DNA of 64,000 nucleotides, taken from Amoeboaphelidium protococcarum X5. Its lineage: Eukaryota; Fungi; Aphelidiomycota. Both the position numbers and the translations under genes were made by a program. Below the pieces are notes generated by a model. The model had not been told where the DNA came from. It did no database searches and worked only from the letters and a program-made list of their open reading frames with translations. Numbering within the stretch: position 1 is the first letter of the stretch; every line of letters starts with the position of its first letter. The stretch is taken from the NCBI GenBank assembly GCA_023515725.1, contig JALDTO010000206.1, positions 687,910-751,909 on the forward strand, in the 5' to 3' direction. This document shows positions 1 through 54,198 of this stretch, one piece after another.

Positions 1-1499
1 CAGTCGCGATGTTGACTATTGGCCTCAGTCTGAAAATTTGTTTGATTAGCTCCTAGCTAATTGCTCTATTCTGCCCTATTCTCAAATCCGAGCCATCTGC
101 TTAATTATTCCATTTAAAGCATTGCTCCATATTTGTAATGTTCTTCACTGTATTATAACAATGCCTTAGTCCTAATACTATGCAAGCTGTTAAACTCGTA
201 AATCTAATCTTGATATCGACTAGCTGCTTAGGGAAAATTGATCATATATTGCGATTATCTGTGCGTTATAAACGATCTGGCTTCACTAAAGAACAATTGA
301 AGTAAAATTTCCGATATTAGAATCAAGATAAGGAGTATATTTACATATCGAGATGATGACATTAAATTTGAGCTGTCGCACTCTGGAAATAGAACTACGC
401 TGGCTTCAGTTTGATTCTCTTCCCGTCTACAATCAAGCGTTAGTTCCTGCGCTAACTTTGGCTATCTAGTAATTGCAGCAGTGAATGGTCTTTTTCCATT
501 TTAGCCAATGTGAAGTGTGCATAGAAAAATAAGTATGGCCGTCAACGTAATAGTTATCTGATGTAACTGGTGTATTATGCTGATGCTGTGAATAAGATTA
601 ATTTATATGAATTGAGTTATTTGTCACTGTAAACGAGAAGAGTGGATTCAATGTGACAGACAAATCTGTATGGAAATGAGTAAATTTTGGTAAATCCCTA
701 CTACTGTATCTAAGCAAAGTCATCCTTCTTTTACTGCCCAGATTATTTGACCCGGACCAGATACGAGGCAGGTACTTAAACGCTCCATCCCTGCTCTTCA
801 CGCTTACATTAGATGAGGTTATCAAAACCAAAAATTAAAAGTGTTCTGCTTTAAGTGCGGTATCAATTAGTTATTCACAATTCCGTATGTCCATACACAA
901 ATGGCGTTTCTGAACGTGGTAATCGTTTAGGAAGTATTATGAGCGCGTTTCACAGCCAGCGGGCTTAAGCTCTCTAGTATGCTGTCGTCACCAAGAATTC
1001 GTACTCGACCAGCTCAGCTTTTAATTCGTTCTTTCACAAATGTCTATCGTCTCTGTTATGTCTCCCTGCGTCATATTATCATTCCGACATCCTAGAAAGA
1101 TGTCGATCGAATGGTCTTGCACTAATAGCACATTGTTCTCCGCGCAGTACTGCATCTGCAGACAAAAGTAAGTTCAATTGATTCAACACAAACTTTATCA
1201 TGCAAATATCGCATTTCATTACGCGATAACCCGTCGTCACGTACCAGAGGAAAAATACTAATTCTGGGCAGGCCCTCACACGTTTGATGACGAGAGCGCT
1301 AGCGCACTCGACAACCATCGTAAGCGAGCCTAAGTTCTAAATGGTAAGAGGTAAGATGGTAGAAACAATTAGCAAAGTAAAATGTACTCAGCCTAAATGT
1401 CCGTTTCATTCATTCATTCATTACTCATCTTTCATTCCATATTATTCTTCAATTCATTATTCAACATTCATCCCAATTGAAGCTCAGGCCAGAGCTTGA

Positions 1500-4418
1500 T
1501 CAAACCATGATGTTCTCATTTTGAATCTCACTGTCATCAGCTCTGCTCTTGAACAGAGGGTTTTCGTGAGAAGAGAACTGAGCAGCATACAATGGGTTCG
1601 TAGCAGCAGATGTGGAATCACCTCCAAAGATGTAGTTGATGTCACGAGCAACTGCACGACCACGACGCAGCATGAACAGACCGAAAGCAGCAGCAGCAGC
1701 AGCTGTTGGAGCCAAGATTCCGATAGTAGCGTTGGAAGAGCTATTATTAGAGGAAGTAGACTGATTGGCACCCTATGGAGCATCAGTAGCAACGACCTTA
1801 ATAACAGCTGGTGTAGCAGGAGCAACTTCAAAGTTCACTGGAGGAGCAACAACATCATCAGAAGAAGGCATAATAAAGACTGGCGCAGCACCTTGTTCAG
1901 ATCCAGACTCACTAATAGGAGGGCTGTTCAGTTTCTCAAACAAGCCAGGGATGATAAAGTCACGAATAACCGCCTGAGTAGGAGATGGAGTTTCTTCCTC
2001 TTCCTCAGTCTCAGATGGGAGCTCTTCTTCAGGCTCTGAAGGAGTTTCAGTTTCCTCAACAATTTCAGTAGTAGATGTAGAAGTCTCTTCCTAAACTTCT
2101 TCAGTGGTGGTTGTAGTTTCCTCAGCAACAGGCTCAGAAGAGGTAGAAGTCTCTTCAACAACCTCGGTACTGGTAGAAGTTTCTTCAGCAACAGGCTCAG
2201 CAGATGTAGAAGTCTCCTCCGCAACCTCAGTGGTAGAAGTGGTTTCTTCAGCAGCAGCAGATGTAGTAGTCTCCTCAGCAACAGACTCAGAAGAGGTAGT
2301 AGTTTCCTCAACAACAGGCTCAGAGGTGGCAATCGCTTCAGACGTGGTAGTAGACTCTTCAACAACCTCGGATGTGGAACTAGTCTCCTCAACTGCCTCA
2401 GTAGTAGTTGTGGTGATGACTTCTTCAATGGTGCTTGATGACGTTGTAGGCTCAATCACGACCTCTGAGGTAGAGGTAGTTGCCTCAACAGAAGACTCGG
2501 TAGTTGACGTCTCAGCAGCAGGAGTAGAGGAGCTAGTTACTTCCTCAGTACTAAACGTGGTAGTCTCAGCAGGAGTAGAGCTTGTCACAGCTTCAGTAGT
2601 AGAGGTAGTACTTTCCGTGGTTGACTCTGAAGTAGACGTAACAGCAGCGCTAGAGGAAGAGGTGGTGGTTGGCTCGACAATTACAACAGAGGAAGTAGAA
2701 GTTTCAACTACAGCAGAGAATGAGCTAGTACTAGTAGGTTCCACAATGGAGGATGACATAATAGAAGTAGTTGTTGGTTCAACAATGATTGAGGTGGTTG
2801 TTGGCTCAACAGTAGCAATAGAGGAGCTAGTGGTTGAGCTAGTGCTAGTGGAGGTGGAAGTTGGAGCGGCAGAGCTTGTGCTAGTAGTAGACGCAGCGGT
2901 GGAGGTGGAGGAGGATGTGATAGGAGCAACGGTGGAGGTAGGACGAGTAGTGGTAGTACTACGAGCAGGTGTGGTAGTGGTGGTAGTAGTTCTACGAGTA
3001 GAAGTAGTAGTCGTGGTAGTAGGAGTGGTAGTGGTAGTAGTAGTGGTGGTGGTAGTGGTGGTGGTAGTTGTAGTAGTCGTGGTAGTTGTAGTAGTAGTAG
3101 TAGTAGTGGTAGTAGTAGTAGTAGTGGTAGGACGAGTAGTGGTGGTAGTACGAGCAGGTGTGGTGGTAGTGGTGGTAGTTTTACGAGTAGTAGTATCAGG
3201 GACGAATACACACTTCTACTAAACATAGCTAGTAGTAGTCACAAACTGCTCAAAGAAGGACTCAATGATCGCAGTGTTCTTTCCGCCAATGAAGGTGTTA
3301 ATGTCAAACACTCTCATAAAGTTACCACTCTTCAGCATACGAGCCTGCAAAGAGTTACCCAGTCCCAAAGCATTCAGAGCAGTCAAAGTCTTCTGGCCAT
3401 CAAAGTTGGCAAAAGTCTGCTAGTTCTAACTCTGATAGTTAGGGTGGCCAAACTGATAAGCAGCAACATTAATGTTATCAGCATTATTCAATTTTTAAGT
3501 CAAGAAGTAATTGCTCGTGGCAGAGGAATAGCCGCTGATAGGGAACACCTGATTAGTATCAGCAATCAATTACTCGGTACCAGCAATCATACTGACCAGA
3601 CTGTTGACGATAACACCATTATCAGACAACATCTTAGCAGTCTCAATGATCTCATTCTCGAAACCATCAGTCAAAGTCAGAGCACTACCAGTGCGGTAAT
3701 AGTTCTGCAGACCAGACAAACTGTAGTAACCTGCCTTGTTCCTTCTATCACCAGGATAGTAATAAATGTAGTCAGTCTTAGCAACAGGACCAAAGCCAGG
3801 TTCAAATTGAGCAAAAATGTCATACAGACTGGTCAGATAGCATTTTTTAGCAGCAACATCGTACATCTGAGTACAGAAAGCATCTTCAACACCCTAATTC
3901 TTCGCGAAGTAAGAGGAAACGGTAGGCAGGTCAGAGTCTTCATCAGTAGCATGCAAAAACACCTTAGTTGCATCAGCACGCCAGTCCAGGATACAGTCAG
4001 CAGCAGACACCTTCTTGTCACAAGCCTTGTTCATGTCTCTACCCTTGTTAGTCAGAGCCATACGCATAGCCTCAAAAGAAGCCTCCTAACCACCAGAAGT
4101 ACAGTCGATAGCCTCCAGATTAGATACCAGTTAACCATGGTTAGAGGTTAAAGGTACGCGAATCTCGGGCTTACCACCAAAAAGGACCAGAGAATACTGA
4201 GCATCAATCTTGCTAGATTGAATCTTGGATGCAAACTTCTTCATACCCTTGATGACACCATCAATCTTCTCACACATGGAGCCGGACGCGTCAATCAGGA
4301 AGAGGAAGTCAGCCTTCTGCACCTGGTTGGTTTAGGTCACAGTTTCATCGGAGCACACGTAGCCGGCACTAATTGTTTGAGCTATTAACAATGCAGCTAA
4401 GCTGGTTAGCAATTTCAT
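1500..4418 (-). CDS. Integrin-beta/Sib-like type I membrane adhesion protein (signal peptide, vWA/MIDAS, Thr/Ser/Glu mucin stalk, TM, NPxY/NPxF tail), 972 aa
   Basis: ORF pieces 4332-4643, 4131-4322, 3570-3866, 2091-2759 and 1500-1715 share one frame and are separated only by TAA/TAG. Signal MKLLTSLAALLIAQTISA; FLIDASGSM (DxSxS); CILDWRADATKVFLHATDE; TM ATIGILAPTAAAAAAFGLFML-RRGR; tail NPLYAAQFSSHENPLF; TGA at 1500-1502. Confidence 0.9.
2090..3200 (-). repeat. Coding low-complexity/tandem repeat forming the mucin-like stalk
   Basis: GTA/GTG triplet run at ~3010-3130 (poly-Thr on minus strand), a duplicated TTTTTPARxTTTxRP unit (~2941 and ~3130), and degenerate EETSTSxEPVA repeats at 2100-2400. 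Confidence 0.85.
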
Positions 4419-5610
4419 CTTATTAACAGTAACGTAGTTTAGATACACAGACAGACGGATGAGGAGTTGATAGTAAAAGAGAAGAGAAGAAGGCAGACTA
4501 GACTTTGGCCCAAGTGGACTATGTTCGATATGCGCGCCACAATTCAGCTGATTGGACACTATACGATGATGCGATTCGCTCGCAATGAATTTCTTACTGG
4601 CAACGGATCCAAAATTATACACAGCGCTGATGATAACAACCAATCAGAATATTCAGCAGAGCTCAGTTTGCTTGTTCTTTCGAAGAATTCATTTTACCGC
4701 CAGCAAATGTGATATTAGATTACGTCTTTATGTATAACAAAAACACGAAATGCACTCTCATTGTTTGAAACACTTTCATTCCGCTAATTTTATTCATACT
4801 TCAGTGTCGAAGAAACTCTCGCAAGAAATCCTGAAACATCAAAACGCGACCGTATTCCTCTGCATCATTAGACAAGTCAAGATATGATGATAAATTCGAT
4901 GAACATTGAGCCTTGCTATTTTAGATACAATCCCAGCTTGGTGGGGGTGTGATATACTATCCATTTGCAATCTACATTTATTAACTAGTGACATCAGATG
5001 CAGGAATATAAATCAGTAAACTTACCATGTGTTTCCGATCAGAGCAGAAGAGGTCTAAATATTTTCGCGCTGAAACGACACGAAAACCGCTACCAAATTC
5101 AAAATAAAGTTACGACTCAAGCAGTATAATAAACCTTACGGCATGAATTATGGCAGACTAAGATCAAACGTGGAATCAATATAAGTTTGTAAATCCACTG
5201 GAAACTCCAACTAGGAGTCCAAATCAAATACCAGGAAATTTCCAATGCTTTCATCTTTTCTGAGCAACACGACGTGGTAGTCCCAAATTACATGGCTCCT
5301 CTGAGCGTGGTGTCTCAAGAGGACTTGTTTTGCATTGTTGGTGATAAATATCACGCTCAATTCATTGATATCCGGAATCATCTAATTCGCCATCATCCAT
5401 ACATTCTCTACATATCGTACATTACATAACACAACTGGAATTCAAAAAATAAAAAGTTTGATAGTATTCGTACCTTCACAATAACACTTGGCGTATTTAA
5501 AGTCGCATTTTTACCATAGGTCCATGATGTCAACGGCAGTTACGAAGAAGAAGAAAAGAGACGTGAGAAAACACGCACTATCGATGTATTTCAAATCTCA
5601 ACATTAAAAC

Positions 5611-53124: not shown

Positions 53125-54198
53125 ATAAATTTTGCTAGTTTACAACCACTGTGTGAGTTCTTTCATGTAAAGTTTATCCTTCAAAACGGAGCAATTGTTG
53201 AGTTGGACTAACCGTGCAATATGGTTCTAATATCGCGAACAATTCATGTGCAACCTTAATGGCTTAGCGGTCAGAGAGACGCGCGTTCAAGTCCGGCTGG
53301 CAACAGCTGTAACCGAAAGGGGACTTCAAAGCGGGATATTGGCTTCGCCTGGCAGATTCATTCAATTTGCCACGTGGTGTTGACAAGCACGGAGTGACCA
53401 ACAGTATTCTGAGAGTAATCTCGGGCGACTCGGGTCTTGAAAAATTGGGGAATGGTTCAGGCAGGCAACTGCGCAGACAGAACCAATTGCTCTGATGCTC
53501 GTGTTGACATTACAGTGGATCCCAAATTGGAGGCTTTCTCCACGGCACAGCCCATAAACTTTTTTTATATTTTGATAGATTGCAAAGACTGTTTTAAGAT
53601 GGTTCCACAAGATTTTTATATAAAACAAGTGAGAGTCGCGCGCGCGGCGCGAAAATTGATGATCATTATTATTAACACTTGTTATCACTCTTCATCTGTA
53701 GTAATTACATCTTTAAACGTACCGGTTTAGAGTTAAACAATTTTATAGAGTCCTCAGAATCAGAGTTGTCGCTAGTTTCATAATGTTAAGTCAGATCTTC
53801 TCAATTTGAAATTGAGTCGGCAGTTGAATAGATATAATCACGCGTATTATCTATCAATTTTATATTCATTACCAAGGTTTTTACGCGGTTATTATTCGCG
53901 AGCCATTTTATGAGGCGACTTCTTTTTCATTGTCTACTTCATCATTTCATCGTAAGAATCGTAGTCTAAATGTTATTTTACAGCAAAGGAGGCCGGAGTG
54001 TTACTTCATTTGGGGATAAATTCAAAGGACTGGTATTGGCGATTGAGATCATTATCACGTACTCCCTTGCAGTACCCAGTCATTTTCGTCACCATTGTCA
54101 TTGTAAGACAGGGCGCCTTATTGCGAATGACTACGGAGGAATTGTTATTGAAATTTTTAATTATAGATATTTTCTTTTCTTTGCCCATAAATTACATA

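Follow-up and report, generated by a model that had tools for sequence, protein, structure and literature searches.

The DNA analysed here, called the window throughout, is a stretch of 64,000 nucleotides from the aphelid Amoeboaphelidium protococcarum X5 (assembly GCA_023515725.1, contig JALDTO010000206.1, positions 687,910 to 751,909 of the forward strand). Translation of 1500-4418 on its minus strand with table 6 yields one open frame, 972 codons long, which starts at the ATG at 4418 and ends at the TGA at 1502-1500. A first-pass annotation of the locus had described a type I membrane protein with a signal peptide, a Cys-flanked VWA domain, a long stalk, one transmembrane (TM) helix and a tail with two NPxY/F motifs, and every one of these elements was found in its place. 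The protein is a probable talin-coupled adhesion receptor, similar in kind to integrin beta and Sib. Its features are given below in window coordinates, with the evidence for each in brackets.

1500..4418, minus strand: complete intronless coding sequence, 972 codons and a TGA stop (RNA contigs cover 1623-4429 without joints)
4365..4418, minus strand: signal peptide, residues 1-18, MKLLTSLAALLIAQTISA (sequence; same N-terminus in all paralogues; the cleavage site is putative)
3195..4364, minus strand: Cys-flanked VWA-type ectodomain, residues 19-408, Cys22 to Cys403 (Pfam VWA/VWA_2 on pieces; profile A2; fold matches)
4278..4292, minus strand: metal ion-dependent adhesion site (MIDAS) motif D43-A-S-G-S47, of the form DxSxS (sequence; column conserved in family alignment A2)
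4083..4085, minus strand: Glu112 of GGQEA, where ordinary VWA domains have the MIDAS Thr (nearly invariant in A2)
3939..3995, minus strand: CILDWRADATKVFLHATDE, residues 142-160, strand beta4 with the MIDAS Asp159, within the signature C.L.WR...K.II.ATDEDSDLP (sequence and A2)
1725..3194, minus strand: Thr/Ser/Glu-rich mucin-like stalk, residues 409-898 (composition; tandem repeats)
1668..1724, minus strand: single TM helix, residues 899-917, IGILAPTAAAAAAFGLFML, with small-xxx-small motifs (sequence; conserved in paralogues)
1503..1667, minus strand: cytoplasmic tail of 55 aa, residues 918-972, beginning RRGRAVARD (sequence and paralogues)
1587..1598, minus strand: membrane-proximal NPLY, residues 941-944 (kept in 10/10 genomic copies and 28 homologous sequences)
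1551..1562, minus strand: membrane-distal NPLF, residues 953-956, 8 residues past NPLY (paralogues and homologues)

The stalk is 490 aa long, Cys-free, and composed largely of Thr (34%), Ser (18%) and Glu (14%), with tandem repeats at 2101-2324 and 2953-3195. The TM helix carries AxxxA runs, and GGxxGGxAG-type TM segments are found in homologues. In the tail, the motif pair reads NPLY-AAQFSSHE-NPLF (1598-1551); the beta1 integrin tail has the arrangement NPIY-x8-NPKY. The tail matched the Pfam family Integrin_b_cyt weakly, at E 0.1.

Twelve in-frame stops of the standard code, of the TAA and TAG kind noted at the first reading of the locus, lie within the 972 codons: TAA at codons 29, 96, 283 and 308, and TAG at codons 111, 175, 331, 333, 400, 401, 776 and 882. 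TGA is the sole delimiter of open reading frames across the 64-kb window, where long frames are rich in TAA and TAG. On alignment of the genomic copies of the receptor gene, TAA and TAG of one copy fall opposite the Gln codons CAA and CAG of other copies; within the receptor family, TAR is read as Gln. Reassignment of UAR to Gln in A. protococcarum has already been published (PMC5304391). In what follows, C-numbers denote contigs of the A. protococcarum assembly, L-numbers loci therein and P-numbers homologous proteins. The table-6 translation of a paralogue, L012:3506-5350, is identical over 604 aa to the GenBank entry MIR68_004457, an A. protococcarum 'hypothetical protein'. The concern that standard-code annotation would miss the gene is thus moot, for at least the 604-aa paralogue is annotated in GenBank with the correct code. 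The search of the protein collection with this 604-aa paralogue (P0090) was restricted to a region of it, since the full-length query was swamped by low-complexity words; this region-restricted search did not return the 972-aa product of the window itself or the long-stalk paralogues.

Transcription of the gene was seen in a freshwater metatranscriptome (run X1). Contigs from this run were found only between 1623 and 4429, none of them in the flanks and none with a joint, and they span the in-frame stops at 3896, 4088, 4133 and 4334, unchanged at those codons. Thus, the gene appears to be intronless and the stops are present in the RNA. The X1 data are assembled contigs, from which transcript ends and expression levels are not derivable. 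Between copies of the gene, the ratio of nonsynonymous to synonymous substitution rates (dN/dS) of the ectodomain is 0.07-0.11. The receptor gene is intact, transcribed and under purifying selection. In a further run, X10, of a kind not on record, the summed contig depth over the window interval 1400-4700 was ~10^5 in the gene and ~220 just upstream (4508-4700). If X10 is RNA, the receptor family would be among the most abundant transcripts; the depth would fit high expression and is no proof of it. Upstream of the coding sequence, about 200 nt 5' of the ATG (window 4419-4643, with equivalents at L009, L010 and L011) are conserved among the tandem and duplicated long-stalk copies. The RNA contigs end ~10-30 nt 5' of the ATG, so most of this conserved stretch is probably a shared promoter.

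The genome was scanned for paralogues with a tail piece and with a family profile, and ten loci with the same tail plan were found. At the window locus, profile A2 matches at E 1.8e-111 over profile positions 2-363. Contig C205 holds three tandem copies, the first of them being the window gene; the remaining two are situated immediately ahead of the window. Three tandem copies are likewise found on C233 and two short-stalk copies on C155, and a more distant pair of copies is divided between C200 and C158. The ten loci represent five genes in two copies each, with a synonymous divergence (dS) of ~0.2 between the closest copies. Total lengths of the paralogues range from 602 to 1010 aa through variation in the length of the stalk. 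The tail reads FGLFMLRR[GS]RAVARDI[NK]Y...NPLYAA[QR]F...[ED]NPL[FY], or a close variant of it, in all ten copies. The fifth gene (~540 aa; L020:371-2086, plus strand, and L021:1177-2856, minus strand) has a degenerate metal site, with DLAGA for DxSxS and TYGDSD for ATDEDSD, and may be a metal-independent variant; its tail is NPLY-x8-NELY, the second motif being an NxxY as in integrin beta3.

To place the gene among other organisms, a profile from a tiled alignment of stop-free pieces (A1, residues 112-330) was searched against 1.84 billion representative sequences, and 73 matches were obtained at E <= 1e-3. Most full-length matches share one plan, in which a signal peptide precedes a Cys-flanked VWA head of ~365 aa and a low-complexity stalk joins this head to a TM helix and a double-NPxY tail. 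Among the aphelids, members were found in Amoeboaphelidium occidentale and Paraphelidium tribonemae. The chytrid members come from eight genera (Synchytrium endobioticum and S. microbalum, Polychytrium, Irineochytrium, Rhizophlyctis, Phlyctochytrium, Geranomyces, Siphonaria and Caulochytrium), and the members from Neocallimastigomycota are giant multi-VWA proteins of Neocallimastix and Pecoramyces. All named members are annotated as hypothetical, uncharacterised or 'VWFA domain-containing', and no Dikarya occur among the family matches that could be named. Of the homologous sequences, 28 retain the motif NPLY-x7/8-[ED]NPL[YF], a count that includes redundant cluster members; the spacer is of 7-8 residues in 27 of these and of 10 in one. 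The double NPxY/F with integrin-like spacing, noted at the first reading in the window gene, is confirmed and also conserved in homologues, so that a lack of conservation, named at that reading as grounds for refutation, does not apply. In the window gene, the head shows the signatures GGQEAxFEAIR, C.L.WR...ATDEDSDLP, FEP.F.P, QFG.P and SLQA..L, and behind it come the low-complexity stalk, the TM helix and NPLY-x7/8-NPL[YF]. By these features the gene belongs to the family, which is defined here as the aphelid/chytrid VWA-stalk-TM-2xNPxY family. In the open literature, no paper was found that joins chytrids or aphelids to integrin-like, NPxY, Sib or VWA proteins; most subscription journals lay outside that search, and a prior description is possible.

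The stalk module is interchangeable across the family. In the Polychytrium member P0045, a pAdhesive_15 'ice-binding-like adhesive' domain (E 4e-17) stands in its place. The metagenomic member P0059 has Cys-rich EGF-like repeats and is without a cytoplasmic tail, and the gut-fungal proteins P0001 and P0007 (Pecoramyces/Neocallimastix), of 1.5-3.5 kaa, carry several copies of the head domain together with Cys-rich repeats.

The partner that a receptor of this kind would engage is encoded in the same genome. An open reading frame of ~2600 aa was identified as talin (Pfam Talin_middle, E 6e-36). The gene is present in two copies, at L018:975-8972 on the minus strand (G000:C205:~12.8-20.8 kb) and at L019:1079-8884 on the plus strand of C155, with ~85 in-frame TAA/TAG. 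Pieces of its F3 subdomain matched the F3 of talin-2 and talin-1, as present in structures of their complexes with integrin tails, with E values of 8.5e-26 and 8.8e-18 and ~75-83% identity, and the conserved stretch takes in the RWAA strand and the C-terminal LIAGYIDIILKK helix. Talin with a conserved F3 is thus available as the partner that the first-pass annotation had postulated, and the refutation that it had tied to a missing partner does not apply. Vinculin is present as well (Pfam Vinculin, E 1e-60); full-length vinculin-family genes lie at G000:C214:722630-725143 (plus strand) and C213:40784-43297 (minus strand), with E 1.4e-60 and more than 40 in-frame TAR codons. Besides talin, FERM_M was matched at four further places, two of them ~2 kb apart, and each of these is duplicated.

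The interaction of the tail with talin was addressed by complex prediction. An in-frame TAG splits the F3, which was therefore supplied as two chains along with the 55-aa tail, a three-chain job unlike those of the calibration. The predicted complex scored 0.35, and the best control 0.03. This mark was attained in 51 of the 78 solved complexes tried, as opposed to 2 of the 108 mismatched pairs. At 0.60 or under, just 5 of the solved complexes attained it, along with every one of the 4 mismatches that passed. The runs agreed in at least 72% of the contacts, with a partner pLDDT (predicted local distance difference test) of at least 47. These values give weak in-silico support to a predicted binding of the tail to talin F3.

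Several observations weigh against a talin-coupled receptor. The complex prediction is weak, was made with F3 in two parts and may be an echo of integrin-talin structures on which the predictor was trained. In the window copy, the position Tyr-5 of NPLY is occupied by Ala, where many homologues have Val, Ile or Phe. Just ahead of its NPLY there is no aromatic or hydrophobic residue, such as the Trp of the integrin beta sequence WDTANNPLY. NPxY motifs also act as sorting signals. In the six-frame Pfam search of the genome, Integrin_beta, Integrin_b_cyt, FG-GAP, Integrin_A_Ig_1, Kindlin_2_N and PID gave no matches; these negatives are weak, the control genomes being prokaryotic and silent for all of these families but FG-GAP, which did match there. 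The absence of canonical integrins assumed at the outset is consistent with the lack of integrin alpha and beta matches, within the limits of such searches, and the kindlin partner also suggested was not found in the form of a Kindlin_2_N signature.

It could be argued that the protein is a surface VWA mucin whose NPxY/F pair serves only as an endocytosis or recycling signal, read by another FERM- or PTB-like adaptor without a mechanical link to talin. NPxY is a classic sorting signal, as in the FxNPxY of LDLR and in recycling by SNX17. The hydrophobic residue at Tyr-5 of many family members is as in PTB ligands, and the additional FERM_M loci, at least three in number, and the low score of the predicted complex would also agree with such a role. 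However, the six-frame search of the genome detected no PTB domain of the PID type, itself a weak negative, and aphelids and chytrids alike keep the integrin-beta-like spacing of 7-8 residues, while a lone sorting signal needs none. Moreover, the taxa that could be named belong to lineages reported to keep talin, with none seen in Dikarya. Sorting and talin binding coexist on integrin and Sib tails, and the two roles are in part compatible. A role in sorting alone is considered unlikely.

The head of the protein was examined for its fold, its metal site and its kinship. Pfam VWA and VWA_2 are the sole families matched above threshold: VWA_2 was matched at E 4.7e-7 to 6.8e-9 by pieces of the window gene and its paralogues, and by 23 of 26 homologues. 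An AlphaFold2 model of the homologue P0009:4-382, based on a 26-sequence alignment, had a pLDDT of 89 and a predicted template modelling score (pTM) of 0.90. All 379 residues form one VWA domain, in which the N- and C-terminal strands pair beside two flanking cysteines and which contains two large family-specific insertions, of ~70 aa after beta4 and ~95 aa between beta5 and beta6. Z scores of 14-18.5 were obtained to many VWA domains. The head is certainly a VWA fold, as the first-pass annotation had described it. The MIDAS residues, namely DxSxS, Glu and Asp, are present and conserved in the family, and T145, D146, E147 and D148 of P0009 are nearly invariant in alignment A2. On the strength of these residues, the MIDAS would bind a divalent metal. 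The Glu of GGQEAxFEAIR, also nearly invariant, lines up with the ANTXR2 MIDAS Thr, though the alignment falls short of significance; Glu at this position is presumably the integrin-beta arrangement, represented by E220 of beta3.

In the Foldseek search against the PDB, integrin beta chains nearly fill the top 50 (E ~1e-7). With VIA-align, the beta-type I domain of Pactolus came first (Z 18.5, root-mean-square deviation 2.5 Å, 184 residues aligned) and integrin beta3 second (Z 17.3, 2.6 Å, 191 aligned), with the ordinary VWA domains of Rpn10 (Z 16.9) and VWF A1 (Z 16.2) close behind. In the model, integrin-beta I domains are therefore only marginally the nearest solved fold. The longest ESM Atlas alignments, of 225-228 residues, were to bacterial clusters with Integrin_beta/vWA_SIBA-E (PF00362/PF24909). 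The Pfam profiles themselves stayed below their cut-offs. Integrin_beta (PF00362) was sub-threshold in 7/26 ectodomains (best E 0.0025, 12-17 bits, cut-off 24.8 bits), and vWA_SIBA-E (PF24909) in 4/26 members (best E 2e-4, for example 14.2 bits, cut-off 27 bits). The segment resembling 'C..IGWRNDA', which had been taken for a sign of integrin beta, had no significant counterpart: a 171-aa piece with 'CILDWR...ATDE' and P0090:62-172, searched by phmmer against the PDB, gave chance matches only and no significant integrin beta. A profile search of the PDB ranked collagen VI first and matched integrin beta6 over strand beta1 and helix alpha1 only. In the family alignment, at the level of sequence, the Asp-Asp after DxSxS that forms the site adjacent to MIDAS (ADMIDAS) is replaced by M-C-x, with a conserved Cys, and no N-x-D-x-P-E pattern of the synergistic metal-binding site (SyMBS) is seen. 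Several weak and partly dependent lines of evidence hint at a specific kinship between the head and beta-type I domains but do not establish it.

These results bear on the possibility that the receptor is an extremely remodelled descendant of an ancestral integrin beta and did not arise by independent recruitment of a VWA domain. In such a history, the alpha partner and the PSI, hybrid and EGF domains would have disappeared where the aphelid-fungal lineage began. The functional interpretation as a talin-coupled receptor would be compatible with such a descent. The rank of beta-type I domains in both structural searches, the long Atlas alignments, the sub-threshold Pfam matches, the Glu at the MIDAS-Thr position, the NPxY-x8-NPxY tail and the Cys-rich EGF-like stalk of P0059 all point in this direction. 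On the other hand, Rpn10 and VWF A1 follow within ~1-2 Z units of the best match, the PDB profile search prefers collagen VI, the ADMIDAS and SyMBS residues are absent, and the insertions are placed elsewhere than the specificity-determining loop of integrins. In addition, the membrane-proximal HDR[KR]E motif is missing and an alpha subunit was not found. Descent by remodelling is thus regarded as doubtful.

The talin-coupled receptor was then compared with known systems. According to PMC9453864 and PMC12686525, Dictyostelium SibA-E follow a similar type I plan: the VWA head lies at the N-terminus, the TM motifs are of small residues, and the short tail holds two NPxY. The Sib proteins and the window protein each come from an amoeboid organism equipped with talin but not with a canonical integrin, and coupling of adhesion to talin is the likely role in both. 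The name Sib reportedly goes back to 'Similar to Integrin Beta' in the work of Cornillon et al. in 2006. In the window protein, the bacterial-type repeats R1-R4 and the Cys-rich membrane-proximal domain of Sib proteins are absent, and a Cys-free Thr/Ser/Glu mucin stalk is found instead (PMC9453864); the head has two large insertions of its own, and its best vWA_SIBA-E score is 14 bits against the cut-off of 27. Sib proteins have been described as 'not observed outside the Dictyostelia' (bioRxiv 10.1101/2020.04.29.069435).

With integrin beta, the protein shares a VWA-type head with DxSxS and Glu at the MIDAS, whose nearest solved fold, by a small margin, is the beta I domain, and a tail with the NPxY-x8-NPxY spacing of beta1, in a genome where talin F3 is conserved. 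It differs in lacking the PSI, hybrid and I-EGF domains, none of which was matched by Pfam, as well as the residues of ADMIDAS and SyMBS and the HDR[KR]E motif. Further, the termini of its VWA domain are paired and Cys-flanked in the model and not inserted in a hybrid domain, the stalk is Cys-free, no alpha subunit and no kindlin signature were found, and Integrin_beta remains below its cut-off. The window protein is not a member of the integrin-beta or the Sib family and shares with both only TM and tail features. Of the likeness to these families proposed earlier, the architecture, the fold neighbours (with beta I domains nearest by a small margin) and the tail stood, and membership in either did not (12-17 bits against 24.8-27). 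The apicomplexan surface adhesins TRAP and MIC2, also from parasites, are similar in design: behind a MIDAS VWA head come a stalk and one TM helix, and the short tail in the cytoplasm leads to an actin-based motility machinery. The TRAP VWA is among the fold matches (4f1j, Z 13.9). TRAP differs by its TSR domains, an acidic tail with a penultimate Trp and no NPxY, and a link to the glideosome in place of talin.

Alternatively, the protein might belong to the coat of the cyst or zoospore, as a glycoprotein for structure or for attachment to the host, TRAP-like or agglutinin-like and with a tail of no cytoskeletal role. The long, repeat-rich stalk of rapidly varying length, the tandem amplification of the gene and the very high apparent depth in X10 would agree with this. 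It is very improbable, since the tail is the most distinctive conserved element over roughly a dozen genera and is constrained between paralogues, which a purely extracellular role leaves unexplained. Chance origin of the tail motif was rejected as well, the motif being kept in 10/10 genomic copies and 28 homologous sequences.

Two further observations concern the assembly and the window at large. For every gene examined (receptors, talin, vinculin, FERM loci), pairs of diverged copies were found, as between C205 and C233, at two places on C155, between C200 and C158, and between C214 and C213; this pairing suggests a duplicated, hybrid or unphased-diploid assembly. At 53303-53524 of the window, on the plus strand, Rfam RF01856 is matched over its full length with 80.1 bits, which marks a signal recognition particle RNA of the protozoan type.

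Taken together, we favour, with somewhat better than even confidence, the interpretation that the protein is a single-pass talin-coupled surface adhesion receptor of A. protococcarum. By analogy, it would work like SibA or like an integrin beta without its alpha chain, as a separate family. The stalk, probably O-glycosylated, would hold the head away from the membrane, and the head would bind an acidic group on the substrate or on the wall of the algal host via Mg2+ or Mn2+ at the MIDAS. Inside the cell, the proximal NPLY would dock into the PTB-like pocket of talin F3, and the talin rod together with vinculin would couple the receptor to actin. Such a linkage could provide traction for the amoeboid zoospore and a hold on the host during encystment and penetration.

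In Dictyostelium, force sensors have shown that the NPxY tail of SibA carries talin force (PMC12686525). Sequenced zoosporic fungi and aphelids are repeatedly reported to have kept talin, vinculin and focal-adhesion scaffolds without integrins (PMC5042518; bioRxiv 10.1101/2020.06.12.142943; PMC10846614), and in basal fungi, which keep talin and other scaffold proteins in this way, the receptor is not known (PMC5042518; bioRxiv 10.1101/2020.06.12.142943). That the present family is this long-missing talin-coupled receptor of aphelids and zoosporic fungi and, at the same time, descends from an ancestral integrin beta I domain, stripped to a single-chain VWA-stalk-NPxY form at the base of the fungal lineage, is a rather improbable combination. 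If integrin beta was stripped down rather than lost, this would explain why these lineages kept talin and vinculin. The conserved and expressed family is a concrete and testable candidate for the membrane anchor of fungal talin. It bears on amoeboid crawling and host attachment in parasites of algae and amphibians, and on whether the coupling of talin to NPxY predates integrins or outlived them in the fungal lineage.

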